In this document: positions 4,178 through 53,770 of the stretch, in pieces | Position numbering within the stretch: the first letter of the stretch is position 1 | Layout: each line of letters starts with the position of its first letter | Source of the DNA: Adineta vaga | Lineage: Eukaryota > Animalia > Rotifera | Reading direction: 5' to 3' | NCBI GenBank assembly: GCA_021613535.1 | Contig: CP075495.1 | Coordinates: forward strand, 620,001-684,000 | Length of the DNA: 64,000 bases | Notes under the pieces: generated by a model | What the model saw: only the letters and a program-made list of their open reading frames with translations | What the model was told of the DNA's origin: nothing | Databases searched by the model: none | Made by a program: the position numbers and the translations under genes

Positions 4178-4179
4178 CT

Positions 4180-9160: not shown

Positions 9161-11221
9161 ATGACAACAAAAACTCGTTTTAGTGATATTGATTGTTCAT
9201 TTAAAAGATTAACACCAATTTATGGTTTTCAAAGTCAAAAACTCGTTTCACTTGATGAAGCATTAAAACCAATTGAATCACAAATTGATCAATTACAATA
9301 TTATATAAAAATCGCAAAAAAACATTGTCATTATCCATCTTCAGATGGATTAACACGTGATGAATCAGCTTCGATTTATATTTATACAATGGAATGGGGT
9401 GAACAAACTTTATATCGTCTTTTAAATCAAGCATTAAGAAATGAAAATAGACAAATTATTAAAATTTGGTTTCCTTATTTAAAATTATTTCATTCTGCAT
9501 TGAATAAATTACCAACTGTTAAAGAAATTATTTGGAGAGGAATTCCTGAAGATATTGGAAAACATTTTATTAAAAATCAACTTTTAACTTGGTGGTCAAT
9601 CAATTCATGTTCATCATCTGTTAATGTTATTAAACATTTTCTTGGAGATAATCAAAAATCAACTATGTTTTTAATTGAAGCATTAAAAGGAAAAAAAGTA
9701 TCGGGTTATACAGAATATGAAAATGAAGATGAAATTATTTTATCAATGGGAACTCAATTTCGTGTCAAATCTAATGCATTAGATCATCCAAATGGATCAT
9801 ATATTGTTCATTTAATTGAAATTAATGATGACGAAGATAATGAAGATTCATTAGCAACAGCAACAAATCAAATTAGTTTAACAAAAATTAAAATAAATCA
9901 AAGTAAATTCATTTCAATTTAATCTTTTCTTTTTAATAAAATAAATCTCAAAATATTTACAAATTAAAAAGAAAATGAGATGTTCTTTGATCTTTTAATT
10001 GATAAAACAAAAGAAACGAATGATTTTCTTATTCCAAATCTCGTCAAAAAACAAAGAAAATTTTCGGTTTTTTTCTTTAATTTCTTCGAAAAAAATTAAA
10101 ATCAAATTTGTTTTCATTGAAATCTTTTCTATGAACAAAATTAATTCTAAAGAGCTTCTTAGAAAAGTTTCTTTTTGAATAAAATCTTCGATTCAAATAA
10201 ATCAAACATTTCTCATTTACTTTTAATCAAAAAATTCAAACTCAATTTCGAATGAAAATCAAATCAAAAAGAAAATCTTTCGTTTTTTCATCAATTTCAA
10301 ATCTTTTCTTTTCTTTGTTTAGAAACGAAATTTCAACAAAATGGAACAATTGTTGCGGGAGGAAATGGAGATGGAAATCAATTAAATCAACTCTATCTTC
10401 CTGTTGGAATCTTTGTTGATGAAAACAAAAACATTTTCATTGCTGATTATGGGAATCATCGTATTGTTGAATGGAAATGTGATGAAAAACAAGGACAAAT
10501 CATTGCAGGTGGAAATGGACAAGGAGAGAGAATAGATCAATTGAATCATCCATCAGATGTGATTGTTGATCAACAAAATCATTCAATCATCATTGCTGAT
10601 CAACACAACAGCCGAGTGATGCGATGGTCAAGAGATCAAAAACAACAAATTCTCATTCAAAATATTGATTGTTTTGGTTTAACAATGGATCAACATGGAT
10701 TTATTTATGTTTCTGATTATAAGAAGGATGAAGTGAGAAAATGGAAGTTAGAAAAGATTAATGAAAACAAAGAAGGAATATTAGTTGCAGGTGGAAATGG
10801 AAATGGAAATCAAAGAAATCAACTCAACTATCCTTCGTTCATCTTTGTTGATAAAGATCAATCTCTTTATGTTTCAGATTATTGGAATCATCGTGTGATG
10901 AAATGGAGAAAAGATGCGAAGGAAGGAATTGTTGTGGCTGGAGGAAATGGTCAAGGAAACAATCTTAATCAATTGAATCATCCTCGAGGATTGTTTGTTG
11001 ATGAATGGAATCAAATCTATGTGGCAGATTCGGTGAATCATCGAATAATGCGATGGTGTGAAGGAGATGAAGAAGGGGAGATTGTTGTTGGTGGAAATGG
11101 TTTTGGAAGTGAATCAAATCAATTGAATGGTCCTCGAGGTTTATCATTTGATTTTGAAGGAAATCTTTATGTTTCAGATTGTTGGAATCATCGAATTGTT
11201 CGATTTGATAAAATTCATTGA
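9161..11221 (+). CDS. Gene A: ARTC-type (R-S-E) ADP-ribosyltransferase fused to 6-blade NHL propeller, 546 aa (exons 9161-9902, 10323-11221)
   Basis: ART motifs IWRG, WSINSCS and ENEDEII. The phase-1 donor A|GTAAAT at 9903 joins in frame to the acceptor TTTAG|AAACGAAA at 10323. Confidence 0.88.
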
Positions 11222-11830
11222 AATGAACTTTGCATTTCAAAGGAAAAGATTTGATAAAAAACGATTTTTGTTGATTTGATTTTGATTTTAAAAAAGAAAA
11301 AAGATTTTTTTCGAAATAAAATTGAGAAAATCTTTTAGTTTTTTGGAAAGACTTAGAATGGAAAAAAATGCAAAAGTTGATTTGTTTCGCTGAAATTGTT
11401 TTGTCAAAGAATTTTTCTTGTCGTGAAAAATGATTTTTGATTAAATTGAAATGAAATTTGTCGAAAGAAATATTTTGATTTGATAAAAATGTTCGTTGAA
11501 TCAAAGATTTTGTGTTTTTGATAATTCTATTTCTTTGAAAATAAAAAAAAGAATTTGTTTTGGTCAAATATCGATTTAAAATGATTAAAAATTAATTTGG
11601 ATTCGAAGGATTTTCGAAGAAAATTATTTGTAAATGTTGTTTGAAGAAATATTTCTAAAAAACGATTCTTTTTGCGAATGTTTTGACAAATTCGATGTGA
11701 TTTCTTAAAACTTCAACAAATTTTACGAGTGAAAACGAAGAAAAAAAAAGTTGAAATCGGATGGAAAAGTTATTTAAATTTTGTTGAATTTGAGTTTATT
11801 TTGATTGATGAAATGATCGAAGATATTCAA
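11222..11830 (+). repeat. 3' flank of gene A, highly similar to 3' flank of gene B (20703-~21310)
   Basis: Direct comparison shows long identical runs through to gatgaaatgatcgaagatatt. A further weaker block is 12240-12385 vs 21310-21480. Confidence 0.85.
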
Positions 11831-12539: not shown

Positions 12540-13535
12540 TGAAATCGACAAATCAAGAGTACAATGGAAGTGGAAATCAAACACAAATCCATAGTCGACA
12601 GAAGAACCTGATGAGTGGGAAAGCTTTTCGGACATCGAAAATATAATCATTGAAGAGGCGTTGGTGACCAAAAACGTTGTAGTCATACTCGACGATTGCC
12701 ATATTAACTTCAACAGCAACATTAAGATTAGCAATAGTAATATCAATAGACAACGTCCTATGAAAAGAGCCATAGATGGTGAACAAAGCAACCAAAAACT
12801 GAGACAAGGTCGGTTCATGTAAATTCCAATCATACTTAAAGCCTCATTTCACAAACAACATGCACTAACAAGAAATTGAGAATTCACTACAACTGCATCA
12901 GAACAACTCAACATAGCACACAAATTTTTCAAGTAAAGTTTATCAAAAATAGTTCAGTGCGCAGCTGACGGTCTAGTTGTCAAGGGTTAGTCATAAGGGA
13001 TGGAAGCATGCAGCAAATAGGAGAATGTTGTGCGCATCTATACACAATGGAAAGTTTTCTCTATCATAAACTCAATAGTATAATGCGACTAGTGGCTGAC
13101 GAAAAACATTACAGTGTATGGTTACACAAGATTGAAACATTTGAACCGTTTGCACTACTCTTAAACAACCATATAGATGAGTCAAAATCTGACAAATCAA
13201 AAATAGTTTATCGAGACGCGTACTTAACTGATGAAATGATCCAAAACTATTACACTGCCATTCGACGACCAAAAGATCTTAATGAAGACGATGATATGAC
13301 TCCATCATTTCCGGCTTTTACATCATGTTCGCGAAATCGAGCCAAAGCGGAAGAGTACGAAAATGTTCTCTTTATCATCGAACTAATATTCAACAGATCC
13401 GTTGATGTATCTCAATTTTCTGATTATCCTGATGAAGAAGAAGAAATTATCAAACCAGGCGTACTTTTTGTCATCGAAAACATTGAATACGATTCCGAGT
13501 GCGGCAAACATCTCATTGATCTGAGCATTATATAG
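12540..13535 (+). pseudogene. WWE-like domain plus ARTC ADP-ribosyltransferase pseudogene
   Basis: VQWKWKSNTNP*STEEPDEWESFSDIENIIIEEA...RQRPMKR is WWE-like, with stops at 12592 and ~12819. The downstream ORF has LYTMESFLY, VYRD, FTSCSRNR and YPDEEEEII. Confidence 0.75.
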
Positions 13536-17620: not shown

Positions 17621-20600
17621 ATGGCAACTTCTCAAAAGATCATTTCTTTATCTTATTCACGACGTAAAATAGCACTTATCATTGGTATTGGTGATTATAT
17701 TATGGGAAAACAATTACCAAATGCAATAAATGATGCAAAAGATATGTCAAAAGAATTGAAAAAGATTGGATTTATTATTCATAATGATGGTGAAGCAAAA
17801 TTAAATTTAACATATAAAGAAATGAGAAGAACTCTTACAGATTTTGAATGTTCAATTGAGAAAGGAGATATGGTTTTATTTTATTTTGCTGGACATGGAA
17901 CACAATGGGAAGTAAGAAAGATTTATTTATTGAGAATTTTCTTTTCTTTTATTTTAATTTTAATTTAGGATCAAAATTATCTTATTCCAATAAATAATTT
18001 TAAAGAAGAAAATGAAACAAAAGTTGAATTAAGTGGTTCTGATTTAAAAAAATATTCAATTAATGCACAAAATCTTTTAAATAATATTGATGATCGAGAA
18101 CCATTTCTTATTATGTTTTTCTTAGATTGTTGGCGAACATATCATTTACGTCATATGGAATTACAAAGAAATACAAGAGAATATTCAAATAATAATTCAT
18201 TACATGGACTTCAATCAATGCCTATTAAAGTTGGATCATTAATTGCATTTGCTTGTGCACCAGGAACAACAGCAGATGAGGGAAATAATCAAGAAAAAAA
18301 TGGTTTATTTACTAAATATCTTCTTCAACATATTTCAAAACCAAATGAAGATATTCTTGAGATACTTCGAGATGTTACACGTGATGTGATTAATGAATCA
18401 AACAAAAAACAAATTCCACATGTTACTTCTGTTTTGACACATCGAAATATTTATCTCAATGAAATAAAACAAGGTATAAAAATAAATTTCTTTTATTAAT
18501 TTTATTGTTCTGAAAATAAAACAAAATTAAAATCATTTCTTCTTTTAGATTCATTTGAATCATCAATAAAACAATTATCGATTTCAACTATGAATAAATC
18601 AACAATAAAACAAAAGCAAAGTAAATTTATTTTATTTTTAATATTAACTAAAATTATTCTTTCGATATTAAAAGAAAAATAATTTATTTGTATCGAAATC
18701 AAATGTTAAAAGTTAAACAAAGAAATATTTATAAGAATATTAAACAATTTCACTAATCCTTTTTAAATCATAAATTCAATCTTTTGAAATTATTTAATTC
18801 ATATGAACTAATTAATTAGATGTTTTTCTCCTTGATCTTTCTATTAATCACGTTTTTTCGATACAAATAGATAAAAAATAGTTAAGTATCTGTGTATTTC
18901 TTTGTTAATTGTGATTTAGACTGACTGATTTTCAATTTATATTATTGAGATATAATGAATTATTATTTATCTTTTGTTCGTTCTTGATAGTTGAAGGCGA
19001 AGTTAGGAGTAATTAGAAATCGACAAATAATTTAACATTTGTTTGGAAACATTTCGATGAAGAAATAACTTCTTAGATCAACTTCAGTCAAGATTAAACA
19101 GATCTTCTCGATAAACATTGTTATTTATTTATTTTAAAATAGAAATTCAATTTCTAAGATATTTTATTTTGATTTACAAATCAAAAGATTTTTCTTTTCA
19201 AATTAATTTCAATTTAAAACAAATTTCTTTCTTTTACGTTTAAAAATTAAAAAGAAAAGAAAAGAAAAGAAAAGAAAAGAAAAGAAAGATTACTTTATTT
19301 TATAATTCAATCAAAGTTCATTTTCTTCAATTTTATTTTAATTACAAAAATTAAAATTAATCTTCGAAGAAAATAATTCATTAATCAAATAAATTATATT
19401 TATTAATAAATAATTTGATCAAATTATCAATTCAACAAAAAAGTAAATTCGTTTCTTTTCTCTTCGATTCTTTGATAATTATTCGATCAAATCAAATCTT
19501 TTTATTTATTTTAAAAAATAAATCAAAACAAAAACTTTTCTTTATTTATCAATTTAAAATTCATTTTTTTCTCTTTCGTTTTTTCAACAAACAAAATCAA
19601 TTTTACGAATTTATTTCGTTTTTTTAATTAACTTAAATAAAATTCCATTCGAAAAGAAAATATTTATTTTCATCTCGTTATTTGAAATTTCATCAAATTA
19701 TTAATGATTTTATTCAAATGAAACTTTTTTCAAAAGAAACGAAACTCAAAATATAAAAACATCGATCAAAACAAATCGTTTTTCTTTTCTTTTCTTTGTT
19801 TAGAAACGAAATTTCAACAAAATGGAACAATTGTTGCGGGAGGAAATGGAGATGGAAATCAATTAAATCAACTCTATTGTCCTCAAGGAATCTTTGTTGA
19901 TGAAAACAAAAACATTTTCATTGCTGATTGTGACAATCATCGTATTTTTGGGTGGAAATGTGATGAAAAACAAGGACAAATCATTGCAGGTGGAAATGGA
20001 GAAGGAGAGAGAATAGATCAATTGAATTGTCCATCAGATGTGATTGTTGATCAACAAAATCATTCAATCATCATTGCTGATCGAGGGAACAGACGAGTGA
20101 TGCGATGGTCAAGAGATCAAAAACAACAAATTCTCATTCAAAATGTCGATTGTTGGGGTTTAACAATGGATCAACATGGATTTATTTATGTTTCTGATTG
20201 GAAGAAGAATGAAGTGAGAAAATGGAAGTTAGAAAAGATTAATGAAAACAAAGAAGGAACATTAGTGGCAGGTGGAAATGGAAAAGGAAATCAAAGAAAT
20301 CAATTCAACTTTCCTATGTTCATCTTTGTTGATAAAGATCAATCTCTTTATGCTTCAGATGAAAAGAATCATCGTGTGATGAAATGGAGAAAAGATGCGA
20401 AGGAAGGAATTGTTGTGGCTGGAGGAAATGATGAAGGAAACAATCTCAATCAATTGAATGGTCCTCGAGGATTGTTTGTTGATGAATGGAATCAAATCTA
20501 TGTGGCAGATTGGGGGAATAATCGAATAATGCGATGGTGTGAAGGAGATGAAGAAGGGGAGATTGTTGTTGGTGGAAATGGTAAAGGAAGTGAATCAAAT

Positions 20601-20702
20601 CAATTGAATTGTCCTTATGGTTTATCATTTGATTCTGAAGGAAATCTTTATGTTTCAGATTGTGTCAATAATCGAATCGTTCGATTTGATAAAATTCATT
20701 GA
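17621..20702 (+). CDS. Gene B: caspase-like peptidase C14 (catalytic Cys replaced by Trp) + Ser/Lys linker + NHL propeller, 588 aa (exons 17621-17911, 17969-18473, 18549-18620, 19804-20702)
   Basis: Motifs ALIIGIGDY, LFYFAGHG, LDCWR, GSLIAFACAPG and NGLFTKYLL. All junctions are GT-AG and frame-consistent (phases 0,1,1). Confidence 0.85.
19250..19284 (+). repeat. (AAAAG)7 microsatellite in the last intron of gene B
   Basis: Direct reading. Confidence 0.9.
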
Positions 20703-23750: not shown

Positions 23751-24833
23751 TTAAATTGTACTTAATATTGTATGAACGATTTGTGCTGAATTTGTAACTC
23801 GTGTAAAATATGGACTTGGATCTCTTGATGTTGCTTCACGACTAAGTGCATCCCAGAAATTTTCTCCATAATAAAAATATTGTGATAAATTAAATAAAAT
23901 CGACATTAAATATGGAAATAATCGAAGACTTGTTTGAATAAATAAAAATCGATTATAATGAAGTTTTATAATTTGTCGTTTAAAAAAATTCAAATTTTCA
24001 TTTTCAAGAGAAAATACTCGACCTGTTGTTATTGTATAACATTTTAATAACATGTTGACAACTGTAAATATATATACATAAGTAAAAACAATAAAACAAT
24101 AAATAATTATCATAGGTAATGCATTTGTAAAGAAATAAGGAAGAACTAATGCTCCAACAAGTAGAAATGTTAATAAAGATAAACCTAATGCAATATAAAA
24201 GATAACTTTTGAAAGAATTCTTCGCCATGATTTCTTTCTTTCATTCATTCTTTGAATTTCTTTTCGATTAATATGATATAAATATAATTTTGAAAGAAAT
24301 GTATAAGCAAAACTTGTAAATGGATCAAATAAATAATTATATATTCGATAACCAAATAAATTATAACAATTCCATGTTGAAGCATTATCACCAGATGAAC
24401 AATTTGTTTGAATTATACAATACCAAATTGTATGAGCAATTAATGGTAAACAAGAAAAAAGTATATCAAATAGATCAAATGTTGGTAATTTTTCGCGTTT
24501 TTTAGTTTTTAATGAAAAACCTTTCATTTCTTGAAGAATTAAAATAGTTGAAACAAAAAATCCATTTGAATTTGTACGAATTTGTTGTGTAGAAATTCGA
24601 CGGGTTTTTTCTTCTTCGTCTACTTCATCTTCTTCTTCAATTTCAATAAATTCCATTGGTAATAACCATGTATCATAAACAGCTTTATCCCAAATTCGTA
24701 AGGAGAAATCAAAAATCAAAAATTGTGCAGCAATAACAAAATATGGTTGAATTCCTGTATGATAATCACGAAATGTATAAAGTAATGGATTCGCTTTTTG
24801 ATAATCTGTTGGAATAGAAGTTACTGTACTCAT
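23751..24833 (-). CDS. Uncharacterised multi-pass membrane protein (tandem paralog 1)
   Basis: 360-aa ORF with several hydrophobic segments. It is strongly similar to 25075-26163 (NPLLYTFRDYHTGI, WDKAVYDTWLLPMEFIEI, WNCYNLFGYRIYNYL). Confidence 0.8.
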   Translation of the reverse strand: MSTVTSIPTDYQKANPLLYTFRDYHTGIQPYFVIAAQFLIFDFSLRIWDKAVYDTWLLPMEFIEIEEEDEVDEEEKTRRISTQQIRTNSNGFFVSTILILQEMKGFSLKTKKREKLPTFDLFDILFSCLPLIAHTIWYCIIQTNCSSGDNASTWNCYNLFGYRIYNYLFDPFTSFAYTFLSKLYLYHINRKEIQRMNERKKSWRRILSKVIFYIALGLSLLTFLLVGALVLPYFFTNALPMIIIYCFIVFTYVYIFTVVNMLLKCYTITTGRVFSLENENLNFFKRQIIKLHYNRFLFIQTSLRLFPYLMSILFNLSQYFYYGENFWDALSREATSRDPSPYFTRVTNSAQIVHTILSTI

Positions 24834-25074
24834 TTTTTATTCAAAATTTTTATATTGAATGAATACACATTTTTATATATGTATAGACGAAAGAAATAAC
24901 CTCGATCTTTATCATATTTTATAGATGAAGGTATCTAGTTATCATTAAAATATTTATTTCTCTATGAATATTATTACCGTAACCAAGGAAAAAATTTCTT
25001 TTATATGGTTGATAAAAAGTTTGAAACATGTCCTTCTTTCTTTCTATGACAAATGTTCAGTTAAAATTCTTTTT

Positions 25075-37869: not shown

Positions 37870-40800
37870 AAAATTTAATTCTTGGGAAAACTTTTCTCGA
37901 TATCTTTAGTTTGATTTTGTTATTTTTCAAATTCAACATATTACAGAACAATCATTCTATTCCGAGATTTTGAACATCGTTAAATCAGTTTCAACTGATT
38001 CTCTTAATTTCCCAGTGGGATTCGATTGTGTTCAAACTGATTGATCTCTTATATCAATACAATAAGTAATGGGGATGAGGAAAGAGAATGTGATTCCATG
38101 GAGGAATTCTGAAACTAATTCCACACTGTTCAACATCACAGAATAGAAAATATTCTCTTTATATCGATTCTTTTCATGAAAATAGATAAAACTTTCTTTG
38201 TTAAAACAATGAAAAATACCTTCACTTCTTTTTCAGTTTCAAATTTCTCCAAAACTTCATAATCATTTTTTTAAACGATTCACAGGTTGTTTCATTTCGT
38301 TGATCGATTATTGAAATATCATCTTGAATATGTTCGACCATTTCATTATTGACAATAAAATCGAATTCATCAAAATTCAAGTATCTTTTCTATCCGATTT
38401 CAATCTTTTTTCTTCGTTTTCATTCTTAAAGTTCGTTGAATTTCAACGAAATTACATCGAATTTTTCAAAATCATCGAAAATCAATTTTATTTTATTTCT
38501 CATTGAAAACACTGTGAAATCACTTTGACAGAAACAAAATTATCGAAAACACAAAAAATAAAAGAAAATCTTTGTTATATCGAACATTTTCATCAAATCA
38601 AAACATTTCTTTCGCCTAATTCAAATTAAATTTAACAAAAATCTTTTCGTTTGAAATGCAAAGTTCATTTCAATGAATTTTATCAAATCGAACAATTCGA
38701 TGATTTAGATAATCTGAAACGTAAAGATTTCCTTCTAAATCAAATGATAAACCATAAGGACAACTCAACTGATTTGATTCACTTCCTTCACCATTTCCAC
38801 CAACAACAATCTCCCCTTCTTCATCTCCTTCACACCATCGCATTATTCGATGATTCCACAAATCTGCCACATAGATTTGATTCCATTCATCAACAAACAA
38901 TCCTTGAGGATGATTCAATTGATTGAGATTGTTTCCTTGACCATTTCCTCCAGCCACAACAATTCCTTCCTTCGCATCTTTTCTCCATTTCATCACACGA
39001 TGATTCGAATAATCTGAAACATAAAGAGATTGATCTTTATCAACAAAGATGAACGAAGGCCAGTTGAGTTGATTTCTTTGATTTCCTTTTCCATTTCCAC
39101 CTGCAACTAATATTCCTTCTTTGTTTTCATTAATCTTTTCTAACTTCCATTTTCTCACTTCATCCTTCTTATAATCAGAAACATAAATAAATCCATGTTG
39201 ATCCATTGTTAAACCCCAACATTCAATATTTTGAATGAGAATTTGTTGTTTTTGATCTCTTGACCATCGCATCACTCGGCTGTTCAATAGATCAGCAATG
39301 ATGATTGAATGATTTTGTTGATCAACAATCACATCTGATGGATAATTCAATTGATCTATTCTCTCTCCTTCTCCATTTCCACCTGCAATGATTTGTCCTT
39401 GTTTTTCATCACATTTCCATTCAACAATACGATCATTCACATAATCAGCGATGAAAATGGTTTTGTTTTCATCAACAAAGATTCCAAAAGGATGATAGAG
39501 TTGATTTAATTGATTTCCTTCTCCATTTCCTCCCGCAACAATTGTTCCATTTTGTTGAAATTTCGTTTCTAAACAAAGAAAAGAAAAAAGATTTATGGAA
39601 AAAGAAAATGAAAAGTTTGTTTTTGTTAAAAAAGATAAATTTCTTTGTCGAATTAAATTTTTTGTTTTAAAATTGATTTTCATTTGATTTATTTGAAAAA
39701 AGAAAAGGAAATTTTCAACGAAATTGTTTTATTAAATAATCGAAGATAAAATAAAGAATTTGTAATTTTTGTTGAAATGATCATTTTTTCTTTTAGTTGT
39801 TTTTCTCATTTAATAAAGAAATTTATTTTCGAAAATATTTTGAAATGAAGATAAAGAAAAGATTTAATTAATCGATAATTTTTCATTTTAAATTGAAGAA
39901 AAAAAGAAGATTTTCTATTGAATTTTTAAATCGAATAAAACATTTTCCACTTCAATTTCTAATTAAAAAATAAAATAAATATTTACCACGTTTTGATTTT
40001 GTTGATGTTTTATTATTAGTTGAAATAGATGAATGTTGTTTAGATGAAACTGAAGAATCTAGAAAGAGGAAAAATTTCAATTTAAAATCTCTTTGATATG
40101 ACTACGATTAGAGTTCGAAAGAAAAAAAGGTCTCCATTTTATGAAGATACTCATTACCGAGTAGTTTTCATGTTTTTTTCTCTTAAATAATAACATTGTA
40201 TACGAGTCAAAACGATGTTTTCCTAAAATAATTCTGAATAATAATATTTAACATTATGCTTTTTTATTAAAATAAATATTTTTTAATTTTTATCAAATTA
40301 AGAATATTGTGTAATTGAAAAAAGTGTCGTTTTCTTTTTTATTTCAGATTAGATTATGATTTAACTCTTAATCGTCTAAAATATTCTTTTTATTGTTTAT
40401 AAATAATAAAAACAACAATGTTAAATATTTTATATTTAATTTATAAATCTCTTTTATAAATTCAATTTTTTTTCTCCTAAAAGATAATTTAACGTACGTT
40501 GATATAATTAGATCTTAGTGTTTACATTGATAGATGTACAAACATCGTTAACAAAATGTAGAGAACATCACAGACAAAGTTCTCGAAACTATTCGATATT
40601 AATAAAGCTTTTTTTAACAGAAAAAGAAATTTTATTGTTTAGAAATGAATGCAAATATCAAATCGTTCTTTTCTTCAACTCTCATATTTCGATCTTGTGG
40701 ATGTATTTAGAACTGAACTTCATCGTCAGGCACGTAAACATTCACGTCCTTAACTTGAGAAAGAAATTGCGAAGAGAAAAAAGATTTCTGTTTCGGACAG

Positions 40801-40990
40801 TCGAGGGTCAAGTGAGTCGAACAACGAACGTTACTTGTCCCTTTTATTCTCATTTTTTAGCGTCAAACATATTTTGTTGAAAAATGATTCTCGAAAGTCA
40901 AACATTGTATTTAATTTGATGTCTCAGCAAGGAGGGAAGTGCGAAGCCAGCACGTATCGGATTTTTCAGGTGTTAAGGTGCTCACACTTC
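37870..40990. repeat. Segmental duplication shared with ~49515-52810 (3' flank, NHL exon, intron, linker exon, most of next intron)
   Basis: Near-identical core ~38115-40610 vs ~49805-52310 apart from the NHL variable codons, with more diverged shoulders on both sides. Confidence 0.9.
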
Positions 40991-41816
40991 CTCTTTGTGT
41001 GCGCGTATGAATAAAATCTAATAAATTAAACTTACTCATTGATTGAATTGATGATGTAGTTTTCTTTTCATTTGAAATTGTTAATTTCTCAATAATTGGT
41101 AAATTATCATCAAAAGGCGAAGCAAGTGTTACATAAGGAGGAGTTTGTTCTTTCAAATGAATAATAAATAAACGTTTTGATGCTTTCCATTTACTAACAA
41201 TTTTAAAAAACGTTCCAGGAAGAAGAAGAATTTCATTTTCATCTTGAAAATAAGAATGAGATTGAATAAATTTTCCATGTAAACATTCAATATTAAAAAT
41301 TGTTCGTTGTTTATCTGTTTGAAGAAATGTTTTGATAACATTCATTGTTTCTGTACATGAACTCATTCCCCACCAAATTTGATCTTCATTTTCATAATGA
41401 TCATTTAAATTTTCTGAAACACCTCGATAAATAATTCCTTTAAATGATGGAAGTTTAAATAAAGCTGTAAAGAATAATTTAAGATAAAGAAACCACGAAA
41501 CTAATTGATTTCGATTTTTTGATCGAAGTTTTTCATTAAGTAATTGAAATAAACTTGGATATGGATGAGGCCATTGCATTGTATAAAGATGAATTGCAGC
41601 TGATTCATCTTGTGTTAAACCATCTTTTGGTTTTCGACAATTCTTTTTTGCAATTTCAATCATTGTATCACAGTCATAAAGTAATGATTTTATTGGTTCA
41701 ATTGCTTCTTTTAATGAAACTAATGGGTATTTTTCATAACCTTTAATTGGTGATAATGCCTGATCTGATTCTTTATCAGCATCTAGAAAGCGTTGTGGAA
41801 TTATTCTTTCAGCCAT
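38670..41816 (-). CDS. Gene D: ARTC-type ADP-ribosyltransferase + 72-nt linker exon + NHL propeller, 583 aa (exons 41816-41036, 40058-39987, 39568-38670)
   Basis: Motifs IYRG, WGMSSCT and QDENEILL. All junctions are phase-1 GT-AG, and the linker exon is nearly identical to that of caspase gene F. Confidence 0.85.
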
Positions 41817-44438
41817 TAAATCAAATTTTATTCAAATCAAAGTTTGTCTTACGAAAAATATGAAGAAATGATTTCGATTTAAATATGATATAAATGAATG
41901 AAAGGAAGAAAGAGAATGAAATGTTTTTCGATGATTTTTTTGTTTATGTAAATAGAATTGTTTGAGAAGATTTTTCTTCATTTTGATTCAACAACGAAAG
42001 TAGAAGTATGAAAAATAAAGAAAACTTTCAAATTGTATTTTTCTTTCTACTTCCTATAGACATTTAAGTTTCTCTCTATTCGATTCAAAAGAAAATTAAC
42101 GAAAACAAAACTATCGTGATTTCTTTGATAATATTTTATTAAAAATTGTCTAAGATGATTTTTCATCACCAGTTCTTTCGAAGTCAACGATTTTATTTCG
42201 TCGTATAATTTTGAAATAAATTTCTTTTCGAACTGATTCTTTCCTCGGTAAAAATTCTTTTCTTCAAGTATAGATGAAGATTCATCACTTGTCGTCAAGT
42301 TTTCTGTTTCTATCGATTGTCGAACGGTTCATTGAAAAAGTTCAATTAAATTTATAGAATAAGATAAAACTCAAACAACTAATGAAAAATACGAAATCAA
42401 CGATTTATACAAATAAAAAAGAAAGAAAAAACGTGAATTTGTATTGATTTTTTGTTGAAGAAATAAATTAAGAAATTCAGTTGAATCTAAAATCATAATT
42501 AATAATTGAATTTGTATCATAAAATTTCATAGAATTTTAATTAAGTATATAAAACATCTTTAAACATATTATTATGTAATAATACAGATTTATCATGTAA
42601 GATTAAATTAAAGAAATATTTAATCAACTATCAATGAATAAACATAAATAAACATGAACACAATGAACTTCACGTTGTTTTCTATAAAGCGTGTGCGAGA
42701 GATGAACGTGCTTCTTATCCTTCACTAAAAGTTACATCTTTTCCATCGCTCATTCTCAAATCATTCGCAGTAAATATTTGTAAATCTGCAAATAATTGAC
42801 AAAATAGAATATTTTCATAAATTGTTCTAGAAAAGTTCTAAGCAATTTGATTTGTATCTTTAGCTAAACACATTTTATCAAGAATCGCTGCTAAACGTGA
42901 AGACTTACATGAACCTGTCGCACGGGTAATTCCAATTAAATCATAGATAATTGAATTGAACTTCAAGTTAACGAAACTTTCTTCATATTAAAACTTCGTA
43001 TAGAATTTCATTTTGTTAATATAAATTCATTGATTCTTTTCGATACAATTCGACTTTCACTTCATTTTTTAATCACATAAGTCAAATTAATCTTAATTGA
43101 ATATCTCAAATAATCAAGAAATAATAAAAGATATTCGCTGTGAGTAAAACTTTATTCATCAACCAACTTTCAACAAATAAAATATCCATATTAATCGCAC
43201 AAATTCGATTCACTTTAAGATTTACTTAATCATTTTCATATGTTTATCTGATTATTTAATTGTATAAAAGAACAAGAAAAAGTCATCAAAATCAAATAAT
43301 GTTGAAGAACAATGATTTCTTCAAACAGTGTTATCCATATTTGATATAAACTATAACATTTAATTCTTCAGATTTCTCCACATTATTCGAAATAAAATTA
43401 ATAATTTGATCTGTTATTGTTTTGATCAATAAATTTGTTCATAATCTTCTGTAAATTATCGAAGAAAGTACAAATTCGTGTTTGTAAACCGAATATACGT
43501 ATCAATATCTTAGATTATTTAAAGAATTTCTTTTAAAAATAATGATTGAATAACTTTTGCATCGAGATGATGAATTAGTCTTTCCAATTTGTTTCAAGAA
43601 GATTTATTAAACGATGATATTCATCTTTTGTTGAAAATTCGAATAAATTATTGTTTATGATCGATTGTTAAAATTAAATTAATCCATGTTGAGAATTTAA
43701 TTTATATTCAATGATACCAAACAGATTCAGTTCAATCTAAGACATTTCTTTTGTTGTTCTTGTTGTTGTTTTCTTCGTCATGTTTGAACAATAAAAATCA
43801 ATCAAAGATCGACGAATTTATTTTAGAATAATTGAATAAAATTTACCTTTGTTTGTTCTTTTACTTGGAGAATCAAAGAGTTTTATAGAATTTATCATAA
43901 TCGAGATTAAATTTTGTACATTTTTTTTCATTCTTTTGGATGATCATGAAAGAAGAAGGTCATTATTTACGACAATTAGTTTTTCTTATTTATTTCAAAT
44001 GTCAGATGAGATAATGCCTTAACTTATTCAGATTTTTAAACAATTTCATTCGATTTTCTGATTACAAATCGAAAATTGATGTCTTTTCTTCAGAATGTAA
44101 AGTTTTTTTCTAAATGATTCGATGGTTTTTCTCAATCATAAAATAAAAGCTTTTTCATTCAAAGGTTTCCAATCAATTTATATTCTTTTGTTTCTTTCAT
44201 TGATTTTCAAGAAGGAAAATACGATTTAGGTGTTGTTAGCAATTTGACACTTTTTCAAAGCTTAGAACAACTTGTCCTCGTGTTCAAGTGTCCACATTTT
44301 TCGCATGATGATTTGATTAGCGAAGAAAGAAAAGAAATCATTTCATTCTATAAAAAAAAGAAGCGAATTCTTATTGAATCTTTTTACAAAAAACAAATAT
44401 ATTTTCTCAATCATTTTTCTACCTAAATTTTGTTTATC

Positions 44439-46713
44439 TTAAAATAAAAACTTTTCTTTTTCTTTTTCGAAATCAAATCGAACGATTCGATCATTTCCAC
44501 TATCTGAAACATAAAGATTTCCTTCTAAATCAAATGATAAACCTTGAGGACAATCCAATTGATTTGATTCACTTTCTTCACCATTTCCACCAACAACAAT
44601 CTCCCCTTCTTCATCTCCTTCACACCATCGCATTATTCGATGATTCCTCCAATCTGCCACATAGATTTGATTCCATTCATCAACAAACAATCCATGAGGA
44701 CAATTCAATTGATTAAGATTGTTTCCTTGACCATTTCCTCCAGCCACAACAATTCCTTCCTTCGCATCTTTTCTCCATTTCATCACACGATGATTCGAAT
44801 AATCTGAAACATAAAGAGATTGATCTTTATCAACAAAGATGAAAGTAGGATAGTCGAGTTGATTTCTTTGATTTCTATTTCCATTTCCACCTGCAACTAA
44901 TATTCCTTCTTTGTTTTCATTAATCTTTTCTAACTTCCATTTTCTCACTTCATTCTTCTCACAATCAGAAACATAAATAAATCCATGTTGATCCATTGTT
45001 AAACGAGAACAATCAATATTTTGAATGAGAATTTGTTGTTTTTGATCTCTTGACCATCGCATCACTCGTCTGTTCCCACGATCAGCAATGATGATTGAAT
45101 GATTTTGTTGATCAACAATCACATCTGTTGGGCCATTCAATTGATCTATTCTCTCTCCTTCTCCATTTCCACCTGCAATGATTTGTCCTTGTTTTTCATC
45201 ACATTTCCATTCAACAATACGATCATTCCCCCAATCAGCAATGAAAATGTTTTTGTTTTCATCAACAAAGATTCCTTCAGGACGATAGAGTTGATTTAAT
45301 TGATTTCCTTTTCCATTTCCTCCCGCAACAATTGTTCCATTTTGTTGAAATTTCGTTTCTAAACAAAGAAAAGAAAAAAGATTTGTGAAAAACAAAATGA
45401 AAAGTTTATTTTTTCGTTTTTCAATCAACTAAAAATTGAAAACGAAGAAAAAGAAATTTGCTTTGAATAAAATCATTTCGAATTTCATGAAGTTTGAGAT
45501 AAAAATCAAAAATTTTCTTTTTAATTTAATTTTCTTTTAGAAATTCAGTTTGATTTTGAATTAAAAGTAAAGAGGAAATCTTTGATTTCATCGAAAATTA
45601 AATTATGAAAAAGAAGAAAAATATCTTTTCAATTGATTATTATAATTTAATGAACGAAAAATAATTCGAAATTTGAAAATCAATAAAAATGTTTTTATTT
45701 TTTCTGAAGATTCGAATAAAAAAATGAATTAATAATAATAATATAAAATCTTTGCGTTTTTCTCAGATTTTAGATAATTTTCGAAACTTTTTTTGTTCAT
45801 TTTAGTGTTCTATAAAAGATTTAGTAATATATAAATGCACATTGACATATTTATTTTCTCTCTCTCCTTACTCAATTCTTCATTATTTTACATATGTTTA
45901 ATTGAACTAAAGATCCAAAATGAAATATTTATGATTGTAAATATGATAAAATAAAATAAAGAAGAAAAGACTAAATTAATCTATTTAAAGACAACATTTT
46001 TCAGTTATTGTTACCCTTTGAACACGAAATATCAAAGTTTCTCGTAATCATTCGAATGAAGAACATAAAACTAAATTGTATTAATTTGATTTGTCTTTTT
46101 GTTCTTCATTAGAAAATAAAGATCTTTTTTAGACATCAGTTTTAAATCAGTTTTTCATTTCAATAAAATAAGAATTGAAAACTTTCAACTTACTCTTTCT
46201 TGAAATAACTGATATTTCATTAATAAATCCTTGACAATGTTCTTGAATTGAAATATTTGATGGATTATTTAGTTCTTCATTCATTTGATTTAATTTTCTT
46301 TTTAAATCCTTCAAATCAATTTCATTAAATTCATTTTCTCGTTGAATTTCTTTGATTTGTTCACCTAATTCGCTTAACTTTTGTTCGATGTCTTTAAAAG
46401 ATGTTTTGGAATGTTCAATAACATTTTGTCGACATTTTCCCGCTGTTTGTTGAATAATTTGAATGGAATTTGTTTCCCATTGATCAATTTGTTTTATTAG
46501 TGAATGATTTTGTGGATTTTGTTTTTGATCGTTTATCGTATCTCTAAATTGATCATAATCATTGATAATAAGATGTAATTCTTCATTTAATGATTCTTGA
46601 TGTCCTTTGAAATCTTGTTGACAAAATTCCTTTGAACAACCTTGACACTGAATTATAATTTTTTTATATTTCAAACATTTGAAACATTGTTTTGTACTAT
46701 TTGCCATAGCCAT
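44439..46713 (-). CDS. Gene E: B-box-like + coiled coil + NHL propeller with alternative C-terminal tail, 479 aa (exons 46713-46194, 45358-44439)
   Basis: Inverted paralog of gene C with the same 835-nt intron. The NHL exon ends RFDFEKEKEKFLF instead of RFDKIH. Confidence 0.87.
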
Positions 46714-49700
46714 TTGTAAGAAAGAGACGTTGTAAAAGTGAAAATGAAAAGATTGATGTTGATGAAGATAAGAATAAAATGTCTCAAAGACAATAATGAT
46801 AAGATATAAAATATGTTGGAAAATAAAGATGGTTGAGTCATATTTTAATATTATTTGATTCTCTTTCTTTTTATCATGAAAACATATTATCTAGTATTGA
46901 AAAATCATATGAAAGAAAAGAATGTATATTCGATCTAGTAGAGTTATTCGATCATTTTATACATATAGATATAGCGATGAGGGACAAACTCTTTAAAAAT
47001 TTCTTTGAATTATAAATATTCAATTACGACGAGGTTTGTGCACAAGTGAAAATTAAATTTTACAATCTTGACCATTTTTACAGAAATAAAAGAAATGTTT
47101 TGTAATTATTGTTTCGAATAATTCGAGTCACATAGTCGAATTAACATTCTCAAGTTTTTGAGTCCAAGTCGAGATTGAGAGTGTATCTTTTATGCCTTAA
47201 TCTTTCCATTCATTGATCGATTTCAATACTCTTCGAAATATTTCAATATGATTTTATCTGAATAAAAATCTTTTTTTTGAACTCTGTTGTATTGAAATCT
47301 TAACATTTGATTGATGAATTTTGTTTCTTTTTTTTAATATTTATTATCATTTTGATTCAAATTTCTAAAATTGAAAATTAATTTATATATCTTTTTCAAG
47401 ATTTTTTAAATTTGTTCAAAAAAAAGAAACATAACATTAGAATATCGATAAATAAATCTCTTAAATTGATTGAAAACAATTAAATATATTAAAAAAGAAA
47501 AAACAAATCTGTTCAATAATTATAATATTTTCTTCTATTAGATAACTTACCGTTCATCATATTCAATCACAAATTGACATAGTTTATTAATGAATCATAA
47601 TTGTATATAACGATATATTGATGATTATCTAATTCTTTACTATAGTCAATTTTCTTTGTAGAATTCTAAAGTATATTACGATATTCTTCAAAAATGAATC
47701 ATTATAATTATTATCGTTTATAAATGGATAAACAGCAAAATAAGAGAAGATATTGATAACATCTTCTCGACATTTGTTTGACAATGAAAACATCAACTAA
47801 TATAACAGTTGTTTTTTTTTAATCATCTCACGAAATATATATAATCAAATGTTTTATTAAATCATAGAATGAGTGTAATGTTTCGAAATAAATGAAGAGC
47901 AGATTCTAACTGACAAACAATTGTTGAAATTTAGTAAATTATAATAATCGAATTATTAAATATCAGTTTTTATGATAATTATGAAGAAAAGTTTAGTATC
48001 AACTTAATAAAATAATTAATATTAATTATATTTATATAAACAAAATCTTTCTCTCGATAAAATAATCGATATTTCAATTTTTATCAATGAATAATTTAAC
48101 TAAACTACTATCTGTTGTGATAAAACTCCTCGCATTGCTTCATCATAAGTATAAAAGATAAAACTTTAGGAAATCTTGTTAAAAATTGTTCATTTCGATA
48201 AATTACTATTGTTATTAATTAACATTGATATGAATTCAAACTATTTTAAAAATAATATTGTTCAAATACTTGAAATAATAGTATTGGAAGAAAAAAAGAA
48301 CACATTGACAATAAGATTCTTGAAAAATGAATTATTGATTCGAATAATCGTATAACATATTCTATTGATCTAAAACTAATCAAAGTTAATTAATTTATTA
48401 ATATTATAACTAATGTAATTGAAATATTATCTAACATTTGAATTTTATTTATTTTCAATGAAAATAAATTTCATTTCTTTTTGTTCATATCGATATCTTT
48501 TAAAATTTAATCTAAATAATAATTATACAATTATTCTTTCATTCAATTATATAAATCATAAAGAATATTAGAAAAAAAAACATTATTTTTCAAAATATTT
48601 ATCACAATTTGATTAAAACTCAATGAAAATATCGATATTGTTAAAACTATTAATAGTTTTTCATATTAAAATATAATTATTTGTTGTAAATTCATTGACA
48701 ATATTTTTAACACTTTGAAATTTAGTTCAATATTTTATTGATTTAGTAAGAAAATGAAATAAGAATGATTTGATTTGAATATATTGATTCAGATTTAATT
48801 ATCAAATGAATATGATAGAATATGTTTAACTATTCTGGATTTTTCTTTCGATTAATCATTTGAAATAAAGTTGATTTGAGATTTTATTTGAATAAAATAT
48901 TTTGATTTTAATTATTAAATAGATAAAATACTTTTCTAATAGAACTTCACAAATGAAATCAAGTTTAGTTTTTAATTTCTTTTTAAATATAAAGTAAATG
49001 ATCTATTTATTAAAGAAAATCTATAATTCTTCTCATTTTATTTGTACATACTATTTCAAATGATTTCAATAACAATTTAATTGATTATAATCTTATAAAA
49101 TATCATGTGTGTAATATCTCTTTGATTTATTGATCAATATTTATATAATTCATTGAATGTTCATTTACGACGATTATAGATTAGATTTCTTTCTATCATT
49201 CAGAAGTATTTGTTGAGTCTGTTCAATATGTATTATAAACATTATCGGTTGATTCGACGATCAGAAAATCAAATATTCATTATTATTATCTCGATATCAT
49301 ATCATTTTATCTAAATCGTCTTGATACAATTCGATTTTTCGGAAAGAAGTTGTCAAACTTATTTCATTGTTGTTGGTATCGATATTAAAATATTTTCCAT
49401 GAAGAATTATTTTCCAAAATGAATTTCAATGATGAACACATCGATCATCAGTAGAATATTTTTGACTGAAATCATATGTAAGTACAATACAAGTTTTACA
49501 TTTACAGTTCATCTTTAATTCTTGAGAAATTTCTCTCGATATCTTTAGTTTGATTTTGTTACTTTTCAAATTCAACATATTACAGAACAATCATTCGATT
49601 CCGAGATGTTGAATATTGTGAAATCAGTTTCAACTAATTATCTCAATGTTTTAAAGAGATTGGTTTGTATTCAAATCGATTGATCTGTCTACACAAAACA

Positions 49701-50361
49701 ATAAGTGATGAGGGTGAAGAAAGATAATGTGATTCCATTAAGGAATTTAGGGAGATAGAATGAAACTATATACCAATATTAAGTGTATTTGGTAATTGGT
49801 TGGAACTAATTCCACACTGTTCAACATCACAGAATAGAAAATATTCTCTTTATATCGATTCTTTTCATGAAAATAGATAAAACTTTCATTGTTATAACAA
49901 TAAAAAACATCTTCACTTCTTTTTTCCGTTTCAAATTTCTCCAAAACTTCATAATCATTTTCTTAAACGATTCACAGGTTGTTTCATTTCGTTGATCGAT
50001 TATTAAAATATTATCTTGAATATGTTCGACCATTTCATTATTGACAATAAAATCGAATTCATCAAAATTCAAGTATCTTTTCTATCCGATTTCAATCTTT
50101 TTTCTTCGTTTTCATTCTTAAAGTTCGTTGAATTTCAACGAAATTACATCGAATTTTTCAAAATCATCGAAAATCAATTTTATTTTATTTCTCATTGAAA
50201 ACACTGTGAAATCACTTTGACAGAAACAAAATTATCGAAAACACAAAAAATAAAAGAAAATCTTTGTTATATCGAACATTTTCATCAAATCAAAACATTT
50301 CTTTCGCCTAATTCAAATTAAATTTAACAAAAATCTTTTCGTTTGAAATGCAAAGTTCATT

Positions 50362-53300
50362 TCAATGAATTTTATCAAATCGAACGATTCGATGATTAAC
50401 ACAATCTGAAACATAAAGATTTCCTTCTAAATCAAATGATAAACCAATAGGAAAATTCAATTGATTTGATTCACTTCCTTCACCATTTCCACCAACAACA
50501 ATCGAACCTTCTCGATCTCCTTCACACCATCGCATTATTCGATGATTCTCCCAATCTGCCACATAGATTTGATTCCATTCATCAACAAACAATCCTTGAG
50601 GATGATTCAATTGATTAAGATTGTTTCCTTGACCATTTCCTCCAGCCACAACAATTCCTTCCTTCGCATCTTTTCTCCATTTCATCACACGATGATTCGA
50701 ATAATCTGAAACATAAAGAGATTGATCTTTATCAACAAAGATGAACGAAGGATAGTTGAGTTGATTTCTTTGATTTCCTTTTCCATTTCCACCTGCAACT
50801 AATATTCCTTCTTTGTTTTTATTAATCTTTTCTAACTTCCATTTTCTCACTTCATCCTTCTTATAATCAGAAACATAAATAAATCCATGTTGATCCATTG
50901 TTAAACCAAAACAATCAATATTTTGAATGAGAATTTGTTGTTTTTGATCTCTTGACCATCGCATCACTCGTTTGTTCCCTCGATCAGCAATGATGATTGA
51001 ATGATTTTGTTGATCAACAATCACATCTGATGGATGATTCAATTGATCTATTCTCTCTCCTCTTCCATTTCCACCTGCAATGATTTGTCCTTGTTTTTCA
51101 TCACATTTCCATTCAACAATACGATGATTCCCAAAATCAGCAATGAAAATGTTTTTGTTTTCATCAATAAAGATTCCAAAAGGACTAGAGAGTTGATTTA
51201 ATTTCTTTCCAACTCCATTTCCTCCCGCAAGAATTGTTCCATTTTGTTGAAATTTCGTTTCTAAACAAAGAAAAGAAAAAAGATTTATGGAAAAAGAAAA
51301 AGAAAAGTTTGTTTTTGTTAAAAAAGATAAATTTCTTTGTCGAATTAAATTTTTTGTTTTAAAATTGATTTTCATTTGATTTATTTGAAAAAAGAAAAGG
51401 AAATTTTCAACGAAATTGTTTTATTAAATAATCGAAGATAAAATAAAGAATGTGTAATTTTTGTTGAAATGATTATTTTTTCTTTTAGTTGTTTTTCTCA
51501 TTTAATAAAGAAATTTATTTTGGAAAATATTTTGAAATGAAGATAAAGAAAAGATTTAATTAATCGATAATTTTTCATTTTAAATTGAAGAAAAAAAGAA
51601 GATTTTCTATTGAATTTTTAAATCGAATAAAACATTTTCCACTTTCAATTTCTAATTAAAAAATAAAATAAATATTTACCTCGTTTTGATTTTGTTGATG
51701 TTTTATTATTAGTTGAAATAGATGAATGTTGTTTAGATGAAACTGAAGAATCTAGAAAGAGGAAAAATTTCAATTTAAAATCTCTTTGATATGACTACGA
51801 TTAGAGTTCGAAAGAAAAAAGGTCTCCATTTTATGAAGATACTCATTACCGAGTAGTTTTCATGTTTTTTTCTCTTAAATAATAACATTGTATACGAGTC
51901 AAAACGATGTTTTCCTAAAATAATTCTGAATAATAATATTTAACATTATGCTTTTTTATTAAAATAAATATTTTTTAATTTTTATCAAATTAAGAATATT
52001 GTGTAATTGAAAAAAGTGTCGTTTTCTTTTTTATTGCAGATTGGATTATGATTTAACTCTTAATCGTCTAAAATATTCTTTATATTGTTTATAAATAATA
52101 AAAACAACAATGTTAAATATTTTATATTTAATTTATAAATCTCTTTTATAAATTCAATTTTTTTTCTCCTAAAAGATAATTTAACGTACGTTGATATAAT
52201 TAGATCTTAGTGTTTACATTGATAGATGTACAAACATTGTTAACAAAATGTAGAGAACATCACAGACAAAGTTCTCGAAACTATTCGATATTAATAAACT
52301 TTTTTTTTTAACAGAAAAATAAATTTTATCGTTTAAAAATGAATTCGAATATCAAATCGTTCTTTTCTTCAACTCTCATATTTCGATCTTGTGGGTGTAT
52401 TTAGAACTGAACTTCATCGTCAAGCACGTAAGCATTTACGTTTTTAACTTCGGAGATAAATTGCGAAGAGAAAAAATATTTCTGTTTCGGACAGTCGAGG
52501 GTCAAGTGAGTCGAACAACGAACGTTACTTGTCCCTTTTATTATCATTTTTTTAGGGTGAAACATATTTTGTTGAAAAATGATTGTCGAAAGTATAACAT
52601 TGTATTTAATTTGATGTCTGAGCAAGGAGGAGAATGCAAAGCAGGTGCCGCCAGCACCTATCAACATATACAGGTACTGAGTTACTTGTATTCTCTCCCC
52701 CGGTAGGTGACGAAGCGCTGGTAGTATCAGATGCGCATTTTCCATTTAGCTCGTACTCGCTCAGTATCTATCGGGGTTTTCAGGAGCTTAGGTACATACA
52801 CTTTCACCCATGTGTCAGCGGGCGGATGTGGGTATATGTGTAGATGTGAGTGAAGAAGATATATCAACACACCCACTCACATCCCCACCCTTAATACGTT
52901 ACTTATGAAAAATTCTAAAATTCTTTACCTTTTTTCCCATTGAATAAACAAATATGATCATCTGTTAAAATAGAAATAACATGTGGAATTTGGTCTTTAT
53001 TTGTATTTGTCATCACATCTTTTCGAACACGACGTAAAAGTATATCAATATCTTCATTTGGTGTTGGAAGATGTTTAAGAAGATATTTTGTAAATAAACC
53101 ATTATTTTCTCTATTATTTCCATCCTCTGCTGTGGTTCCTGGTCCACAGGCAAATGCAATCAATGAACCCGCATTTTTTGTAGACATTGAACTTAATCCT
53201 CTGGTATGATTAGTTGAATTACCTCTTGTAGATTTTTGTAAATCAGCATTACGTAAATGATAAGTTCGACAACAATCTAAGAAAAACATGATTAAATATG

Positions 53301-53770
53301 GATTTTGATCATCAATTTTATTAAGAAAATGTTGTGCATTGATTGCGTAATTTCTAAGTTCAGAACCAGTTAATCCTTTTTTTCCATCGTATTCTTCTTT
53401 AAAATCATCCGATGGAATTAAATAATTTTGATCCTAAAAATAAAGAATAAGAAAATAAAAAATTGTTCAATATTAATCTTACTTCCCATTGTGTACCATG
53501 TCCTGCAAAATAAAATAAAACCATATCATCTTTTCTTAATGAACGTATAAAACTATTAACTGTCGATTCAAATTCATCACAAGTTAAATTTAATTTTGCT
53601 TCACCACCATGAATAATAAATCCCATTGATTTTAACATTTTCGACATATCATTTGCATCGTTAACAGCGTTTGCTAAAGAATTATTAATTTCATATTTAC
53701 TAATACCAATAACAAGTGCTATTTTACGATGAATATTAACTGAAGAAGAAAGATTTTCTATGGAAGCCAT
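50362..53770 (-). CDS. Gene F: caspase-like peptidase C14 (intact His/Cys dyad) + linker + NHL propeller, 587 aa (exons 53770-53483, 53433-52929, 51751-51680, 51260-50362)
   Basis: LFYFAGHG and LDCCR are intact. Intron positions and phases match gene B. Confidence 0.87.
52820..52891. repeat. Degenerate telomere-like hairpin element in the intron of gene F
   Basis: G/T-rich arm (ggatgtgggt...gtgagtg), core gaagaagatata, then C/A-rich arm (cacacccactcacatccccaccct). Confidence 0.6.

Follow-up and report, generated by a model that had tools for sequence, protein, structure and literature searches.

Six neighbouring genes of Adineta vaga (a bdelloid rotifer), here labelled A to F, each end in a near-identical exon encoding an NHL-repeat beta-propeller. 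Three unrelated kinds of N-terminal module precede this exon: an ADP-ribosyltransferase (ART) in A and D, a caspase-like C14 protease in B and F, and a zinc finger with a predicted coiled coil in C and E. The genes lie in a 64-kb stretch of contig CP075495.1 (assembly GCA_021613535.1, positions 620,001 to 684,000), hereafter called the window, from whose first letter all coordinates are counted. From exon structure, transcript data and the divergence between copies, we conclude that recombination has placed the NHL exon, alone or together with a linker exon, as a phase 1-1 module downstream of unrelated 5' exons. There is good support for the structural and evolutionary parts of this picture, namely a phase-1 NHL module that is shuffled, a scaffold under concerted evolution and a top face that diversifies. 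As a whole, we consider it probable on balance that the family consists of shuffled, phase-1, hypervariable NHL sensors joined to effectors, with non-self recognition as the likely purpose.

The shared NHL exon and its N-terminal partners

The six NHL exons (899–920 nt each) are situated at 10323–11221 (A), 19804–20702 (B) and 29812–30710 (C) on the forward strand, and at 38670–39568 (D), 44439–45358 (E) and 50362–51260 (F) on the reverse strand. All coordinates and strands agree with those of the sequence-only reading that preceded this analysis, and its description of six near-identical terminal exons holds, the mean column identity being 95%. The alignment is gapless except for the divergent 3' tail of the E exon, which is 7 codons longer and stops with TAA; the A exon encodes six blades and stops with TGA. 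The alignment is complemented by protein comparison for all six, and additionally by an RNA joint for D and by Pfam, AlphaFold2 (AF2) and Foldseek for A. The encoded domains are 88–92% identical at the protein level and match the Pfam family NHL (PF01436, 1.7e-33). The splice acceptor ...tttctttgtttag/AAACGAAATTTC is common to all six (a slash marks the splice site here and below), and between copies homology usually begins a mere 20–57 nt 5' of it (blastn). The six genes are part of a tandem and inverted cluster. A further, distant NHL propeller of a different NHL subfamily, approximately 23–24% identical to that of A, lies at 12–593 on the reverse strand and runs off the start of the window.

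Pfam detected the ART domain (PF01129) above its cut-off in the open reading frames (ORFs) 9161–9922 of gene A (2.3e-09) and 40911–41816 of gene D (1.5e-09). Exon 1 of A (9161–9902, +) encodes an ART of the R-S-ExE type and ends in phase 1 (AAA/GTAAAT), as read from the Pfam match, the donor and the motifs. Exon 1 of D (41036–41816, −; 781 nt) also ends in phase 1. The catalytic motifs read WRG, SCS and EDE in A, aligned to YRG, STS and EAE of the type VI secretion system toxin Tre1 (PDB 6DRE), which is the nearest solved relative of the ART exon (E 0.01); in D they read YRG, SSC and ENE. The domain and the Arg, Ser-x-Ser and Glu-x-Glu motifs, taken together, identify both exons as predicted R-S-E ADP-ribosyltransferases. 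The architecture of gene A recurs in a gene annotated in GenBank, I4U23_005867 (P0211, 546 aa), which is the paralogous locus L032 located 30 kb beyond the window. Its annotated junction between ART, a single Lys and NHL reads ...KINQ/K/TKFQQ, the same as predicted for gene A.

Two other ART sequences deserve mention. A lone ART ORF of a different subfamily is present between A and B (13008–13535, +; PF01129, 5.7e-07). No NHL exon was detected downstream of this ORF, which may be a gene fragment or may have a different partner. At locus L034 (positions 3165–3526 of G000:C3:3619391-3625984), the sequence upstream of an intact NHL exon contains only fragments of a D-type ART, which may represent a decaying effector exon before a preserved propeller.

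The caspase-like domain (Peptidase_C14, PF00656) occupies two exons each in gene B (17621–18499) and gene F (52915–53770). In B, exon 1 (17621–17911, +; 6e-18) encodes the N-terminal half with the His of FYFAGHG and ends at a phase 0 donor (GAA/GTAAGA), and exon 2 (17969–18473, +; 7e-14) encodes the C-terminal half with FFLDCWRT and ends in phase 1 (CAAG/GTATAA). In F, the N-terminal half (53483–53770, −; 2.3e-17) is followed by a C-terminal half with an intact FFLDCCRT (52929–53433, −; 6.5e-14), whose phase 1 end AAAAG/GTAAAG is also covered by RNA. The motifs AGHG and FFLDCCRT are kept in F, in the further A. vaga locus L042 and in the relatives P0139 and P0151. On a different chromosome there is a copy that shares 89% identity with B's caspase-like domain. 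Searching the PDB with the caspase exon as a single sequence yielded no informative match.

The first exon of genes C and E encodes a Cys-rich zinc finger of the cross-brace type, which leads into a long helix or coiled coil. That of C (28457–28976, +) ends at a phase 1 donor (AAGA/GTAAGT), and its paralog in E (46194–46713, −) was identified by blastn homology. The reading frame opens at the finger in both genes and comprises 188 aa, of which 173 aa precede the splice donor. The finger has the form C-x2-C-x9-C-x2-C-x4-C-x6-H with six invariant ligand positions (C, C, C, C, C, H), and the long helix begins at residue 32 in the model of this exon; the weak PDB profile matches are all of coiled-coil type. 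The label B-box from the earlier description is unproven: the finger had no significant match in Pfam, in the PDB profile search or in Foldseek. The weak Foldseek matches are led by an AN1 finger (E 0.49), with the PML B1-box at rank 8; neighbours in a protein-language-model atlas belong to B-box clusters, at a score of just 0.83, which we treat as a lead; and the relative P0147 matches an ANCHR-like B-box below the cut-off. We therefore describe it as a B-box-like cross-brace zinc finger, otherwise unclassified. Pfam detected no RING domain in these exons.

Two observations concern the surroundings and relatives of these zinc-finger genes. Directly upstream of C, an ORF at 27073–27921 (+; also given as 27073–28143) resembles rhodopsin-type receptors (7tm_1, 6e-07, just below the Pfam cut-off); it is a separate receptor gene and does not belong to the model of C. 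At locus L043 (positions 1077–1223, −, of G000:C3:19285612-19292196), a 49-aa zinc finger runs in frame into the NHL domain within a single 387-aa ORF, which by its sequence appears to be a natural deletion or fusion variant without coiled coil or intron.

The last base of every effector exon is the first base of a codon. Genes B, D and F contain, between effector and NHL exon, an additional phase 1-1 mini-exon of 72 or 75 nt that encodes a Ser/Thr/Lys linker and that the sequence-only reading had missed. As a consequence of these phases and lengths every junction is in phase 1, and the claim that the NHL exon is always entered in phase 1 is upheld by the donors and by the RNA joints. The mini-exon of D (39987–40058, −; 72 nt; SSVSSKQHSSISTNNKTSTKSKR) has RNA joints on both sides. 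That of F (51680–51751, −; 72 nt) is identical to it at 70 of 72 nt, has the same borders and coincides with loose ends of RNA contigs. The 75-nt mini-exon of B (18546–18620, +), flanked by AG and GTAAAT, is predicted from homology (75.6% nucleotide match to that of D).

RNA contigs from four sequencing runs were aligned to the 4.2-kb region of gene D (38300–42500). Two joints with GT..AG borders on the reverse strand, 41036->40058 and 39987->39568, connect the ART exon, the 72-nt mini-exon and the NHL exon, and a loose end of 18 T at 38462 marks the poly(A) addition site of D. A third joint with such borders, 39990->39568, was present in a single contig of run X1; it lies 3 nt from the second joint, has three unaligned letters (TAT) and is probably due to a paralog or to misalignment. 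Other contigs link the last 30 nt of the caspase exon of F (1 mismatch) to the mini-exon, and one contig of run X1 joins the end of an F-type caspase exon straight to the NHL exon, skipping the 72-nt linker. Because the contigs continue into the end of F's caspase exon, splicing from caspase to NHL is transcribed, both with and without the mini-exon, which suggests that the linker is alternatively spliced. Effector and NHL exons were analysed singly, and the full-length relatives P0211, P0079 and P0139 stood in for the spliced proteins.

Near-identical repeats of 0.9 kb are difficult to assemble, and the arrangement could in principle be an artefact of assembly or annotation, made up of collapsed or chimeric repeats or of unspliced neighbouring genes. 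We find this hardly credible: the hypervariable haplotype and the flanks are unique to each copy, RNA contigs span the joints, and A. ricciae, A. steineri and Rotaria have independent annotations of the same architectures. Pfam, the phase 1 junctions, the RNA contigs and the annotation of P0211 agree that one NHL exon has been joined to three unrelated N-terminal modules, as had been proposed.

Module swapping and diversification of the propeller

The reassortment of sensor and effector is argued here from contrasts in divergence and from one shared cassette. The ART domains of A and D are 43% identical in amino acids and 65% in nucleotides, whereas the frameworks of their NHL exons differ at 8 of 798 nt. 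Likewise, the caspase-like domains of B and F are 57–60% identical in amino acids, with 25 differences in 798 nt of NHL framework. The ART gene D and the caspase gene F share a 3' cassette of 3.1 kb (37873–40946 in D, −; 49513–52641 in F), which is 93.9% identical over 3132 nt (blastn), although their 5' effector exons are unrelated. The cassette starts approximately 90 nt inside intron 1 and takes in the mini-exon together with intron 2, then the NHL exon and approximately 800 nt of 3' flank; it is an unusually clean example of exon shuffling caught in progress. The different histories of sensor and effector support the earlier proposal that the two are reassorted independently. In a star-like tree of the NHL frameworks, copies group by genomic location and not by partner.

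Variation within the NHL exon is highly concentrated. Among the 295 codons common to the six copies, 230 are identical in nucleotides in all six, 8 vary only synonymously and 57 vary in amino acid; 29 of these 57 have at least three different residues, hereafter the hypervariable codons. This pattern is far from chance. Over the six copies the framework has 0.027 synonymous substitutions per site (dS) and 0.019 nonsynonymous substitutions per site (dN), and dN at the 29 hypervariable codons is 0.71. The variable codons are periodic, recurring in each blade at G-N-G-x-G, L-x-x-P-x-G and [AS]-D-x-x-N-x-R. The highly diverse positions, about five per blade, are found where the d-a loop ends, in the first residues of the innermost strand and in the b-c loop, and their commonest residues are Tyr, Cys, Ser, Trp, Arg and Gly.

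The AF2 model of the A exon contains 24 strands, with a predicted local distance difference test score (pLDDT) of 88 and a predicted template modelling score (pTM) of 0.89. Its best natural Foldseek matches are the NHL domains of Thin, TRIM2 and TRIM71/LIN-41 (template modelling score, TM, ~0.8; E 1e-21 to 1e-17). Together with the PF01436 match, these results identify the domain as a closed, six-bladed NHL-repeat beta-propeller. In TRIM NHL domains both termini lie in blade 6, and the C-terminal end is situated at the bottom face (PMC9634614), from which it follows that the P-x-G-hhh-D strand is the innermost strand a. The top surface of Brat, to which RNA binds, is made up of the b-c and d-a loops (PMC4015489). 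The variable positions, being located in the d-a loop, at the beginning of strand a and in the b-c loop, belong to the top face by the Brat definition. On topological grounds, the hypervariable residues would thus surround the central channel on the face that binds ligands in Brat and LIN-41; the AF2 strand map and these published definitions agree in this with the sequence-only reading.

Four recently duplicated pairs (C–E, D–F, A–L031 and L031–L032, in which L031 and L032, like L034, L042 and L043, are further NHL-exon loci of the A. vaga genome) served as a control for divergence. Their introns and upstream regions differ at 1–5% of bases (mostly 1–3%) and their NHL frameworks at 2%, whereas the hypervariable codons differ at 32–45% of bases, 17–23 of the 29 codons being changed. 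The hypervariable codons have therefore diverged 15–30 times faster than the introns of the same duplicates. The contrast between scaffold and contact sites is among the sharpest known to us in animal gene families.

A neutral explanation, in which unconstrained loops drift while gene conversion homogenises the rest without any selection for diversity, draws on the evident concerted evolution: framework dS is 0.027 even between genes with ART domains that are 43% identical. We nevertheless regard it as very improbable. The hypervariable codons are interleaved every 10–25 codons with the framework, so conversion tracts would overwrite them, which speaks decisively against drift on a converted scaffold. 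The excess over introns in recent duplicates is beyond drift, and in other species, too, variability falls on these sites.

Among 105 domains taken from other bdelloids, the most variable positions coincide with those of A. vaga (3.0 versus 0.77 bits, p=7e-18), and 24 of the top 29 variable sites are common to both sets. Within A. vaga, 89% of the hypervariable codons of the window have an identical counterpart at the corresponding site of another of 24 close paralogs, among which up to 12 different residues occur per hypervariable site. The pairwise homoplasy index (PHI) test for recombination was significant across 25 copies (p=0.001). We propose that local duplication and ectopic gene conversion would maintain the identity of the scaffold, and that diversifying selection would maintain the diversity of the contact codons, with variants being shuffled among paralogs. 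Nothing in the analysis points to codon-targeted mutagenesis as an extreme form of this process.

Family size and possible function

A search of the A. vaga genome (six contigs, 100.8 Mb; the window lies on contig C2) with the NHL exon returned 955 candidates at first look and at least 134 copies that were scored; these are 49–100% identical, and most are uninterrupted single reading frames. The sequence-only reading had called for a genome-wide search to list all N-terminal partners; partners were tallied in the 26 closest copies, of which 15 have a zinc finger and coiled coil, 6 an ART (of two types), 3 a caspase-like domain and 2 no partner that was found. A protein search restricted to proteins of 299–950 aa returned 3,791 clusters at E<=1e-40, and among the 120 clusters listed, all those with an organism name are from the bdelloids Adineta, Rotaria or Didymodactylos. 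The NHL gene family is bdelloid-specific. In the public relatives the commonest partner is again a zinc finger with coiled coil of approximately 170 aa, giving proteins of approximately 470 aa, and other partners are ART, Peptidase_C14, MACPF with FN3, BTB_2, TPR, Apple/PAN and DED (the last by the name given in the source). NHL has been listed among the expanded repeat families of A. vaga (PMC3846280), and an unexplained, bdelloid-specific expansion of 101 Peptidase_C14 proteins has been reported for this species (PMC11258130). Both papers are silent on the fusions, on the shared exon, on the hypervariable face and on the swapping of modules. No description of an NHL sensor–effector system was found in the literature searched, coverage of which was incomplete.

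A role in conflict or defence is inferred from the ART, caspase-like, pore-forming and death-domain partners, together with copy number, clustering and the diversification of the contact sites. Pfam found no NTPase (NACHT or NB-ARC) in any exon or neighbouring ORF, and gene D is wholly accounted for by the ART, a 24-aa linker and the NHL domain, so the earlier suggestion of a system without such a hub is borne out. No signal peptide was evident by eye at the N-termini, and the proteins are therefore probably cytosolic. The top face could serve as a variable binding site for protein or RNA, and the N-terminal module would act on, or because of, the bound ligand. The propeller might recruit its bound target to the enzyme, like the substrate-recognition domain of a TRIM protein; otherwise, clustering on a multivalent ligand might activate the protease or the assembly of the coiled coil. 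The likeliest role would be the recognition of non-self or of genomic parasites (products of pathogens, viruses or transposons), leading to ADP-ribosylation, proteolysis or cell death.

The closest natural structures of the propeller (Thin, TRIM2 and TRIM71/LIN-41, TM ~0.8) are RNA-binding TRIM-NHL domains. Brat binds RNA with its top face, the architecture met most often has a zinc finger, a coiled coil and then NHL, and the hypervariable sites are often occupied by Tyr, Trp, Arg and His. These features would suit diversified, TRIM-NHL-like RNA-binding regulators whose variable top face reads endogenous RNA motifs in ordinary gene regulation. We consider such a function unlikely, as housekeeping regulators are usually conserved, while contact codons here change 15–30 times faster than introns; the copies number in the hundreds; and the partners ART, caspase, MACPF and DED belong typically to pathways of conflict and death rather than to translational control.

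Intragenomic or intraspecific conflict, involving toxin–antidote pairs, allorecognition or selfish families in place of immunity to pathogens, would be consistent with the nearest relative of the ART being an interbacterial toxin (Tre1, 6DRE, E 0.01) and with the rapid turnover, clustering and inverted duplications of the genes. No antidote-like partner gene was seen beside the copies, though, bdelloid asexuality limits the scope for drive, and the same hypervariable positions persist across genera; this makes the explanation decidedly unlikely in our judgement.

Several points weigh against the reading that we favour, namely hypervariable NHL sensors shuffled onto effectors for non-self recognition. 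The immune role, the ligand and the activity of the effectors are predictions from sequence and models, and the assignment to the top face is topological, taken from the strand map rather than from coordinates. Gene B alone reads FFLDCWRT, in which a Trp (TGG) replaces the conserved Cys before the Arg, the catalytic Cys being assigned by motif; B may thus encode an inactive (pseudo-)protease on an intact hypervariable propeller. The RNA check that the sequence-only reading had proposed supported the joints of D and the end of F's caspase exon, and the models of A, B, C and E follow from splice-site logic and homology. The RNA contigs carry 1–3 mismatches and possibly originate from an allele or a close paralog. 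Approximately unbiased (AU) tests against monophyly of partners were marginal (p 0.03–0.12) for groups that were named after inspection of the tree, and the PHI test within the 8-copy cluster was not significant (p=0.42). Finally, few C14 genes respond to infection, and most of these are down-regulated, in a study in which metazoan families were not analysed (PMC11258130).

More tentatively, and with some doubt, we suggest that bdelloids possess a germline repertoire of hundreds of NHL exons without an NTPase hub, in which gene conversion would homogenise the scaffold and reshuffle contact codons, and phase-1 shuffling would link the resulting specificities to ADP-ribosylating, proteolytic, pore-forming and death-domain outputs. 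To our knowledge, innate immune recognition in bdelloids is essentially undescribed. How these animals persist without conventional sex against coevolving pathogens is a long-standing question, for which the NHL family is a concrete candidate. If the suggestion is true, it would provide an ancient asexual animal with a recombination-based means of keeping up with pathogens and genomic parasites. The family also offers a natural collection of NHL propellers in which defined positions vary, and this could inform the design of binders on the NHL fold.

Relation to known systems and neighbouring genes

The family shares with the TRIM-NHL proteins (Brat, LIN-41/TRIM71, TRIM2/3/32 and Thin) a C-terminal, six-bladed NHL domain with a top face that binds ligands in those proteins and is predicted to do so here, mostly preceded by a zinc finger and, by prediction, a coiled coil. 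It differs from them in that a RING is absent, the B-box is unproven and copies number in the hundreds as opposed to 3–5. Moreover, its top face is hypervariable, and ART, caspase-like, MACPF, BTB or DED modules can stand in for its N-terminal part. Like the positively selected TRIM restriction factors TRIM5alpha and fish finTRIM, whose B30.2/SPRY loops are variable, the family is germline-encoded, clustered, fast-duplicating and probably cytosolic, with a conserved scaffold on which a few hypervariable patches would set specificity. Recognition by NHL would take the place of SPRY here, and enzymatic toxin or death outputs that of a RING E3 ligase.

Fungal NLRs (HET-E/D and other NWD proteins, with WD40, ANK or TPR repeats) have swappable effectors, hypervariable contacts on a homogenised scaffold and recombination as the source of diversity. 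The analogy with the fungal HNWD proteins drawn in the sequence-only reading holds for the swappable effectors and the hypervariable propeller. It fails for homogenisation between the repeats of one protein, a defining trait of HNWD, as the blades within one NHL exon are 65–72% identical in nucleotides (blastn); unlike in the fungal NLRs, homogenisation acts between paralogs and not between the repeats of one gene, and there is no NACHT/NB-ARC hub. The rotifer ART exon has kept the Arg, Ser-x-Ser and Glu-x-Glu motifs of the R-S-E ADP-ribosyltransferases (PF01129; Tre1, 6DRE) and differs from vertebrate ecto-ARTs in having no signal peptide evident by eye and in its fusion to an NHL propeller. 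Because an NTPase is absent, the family does not belong to the NLR or STAND proteins, and because a RING is absent, it is not a canonical TRIM family. It is closest to a TRIM-NHL derivative with the evolutionary behaviour of TRIM5/finTRIM restriction factors and of fungal NLR sensors.

Elsewhere in the window, Pfam found no match in the flanking ORFs at 1112–6797 and 58447–61892, nor at 23751–26163. The last region, located between B and C, contains two tandem ORFs of 360 and 362 aa on the reverse strand (23751–24833 and 25075–26163). On the other side of the cluster, an ORF of 681 aa (58447–60492, +) is followed nearby by a TPR-like tblastn match at 60732–60962 (−).

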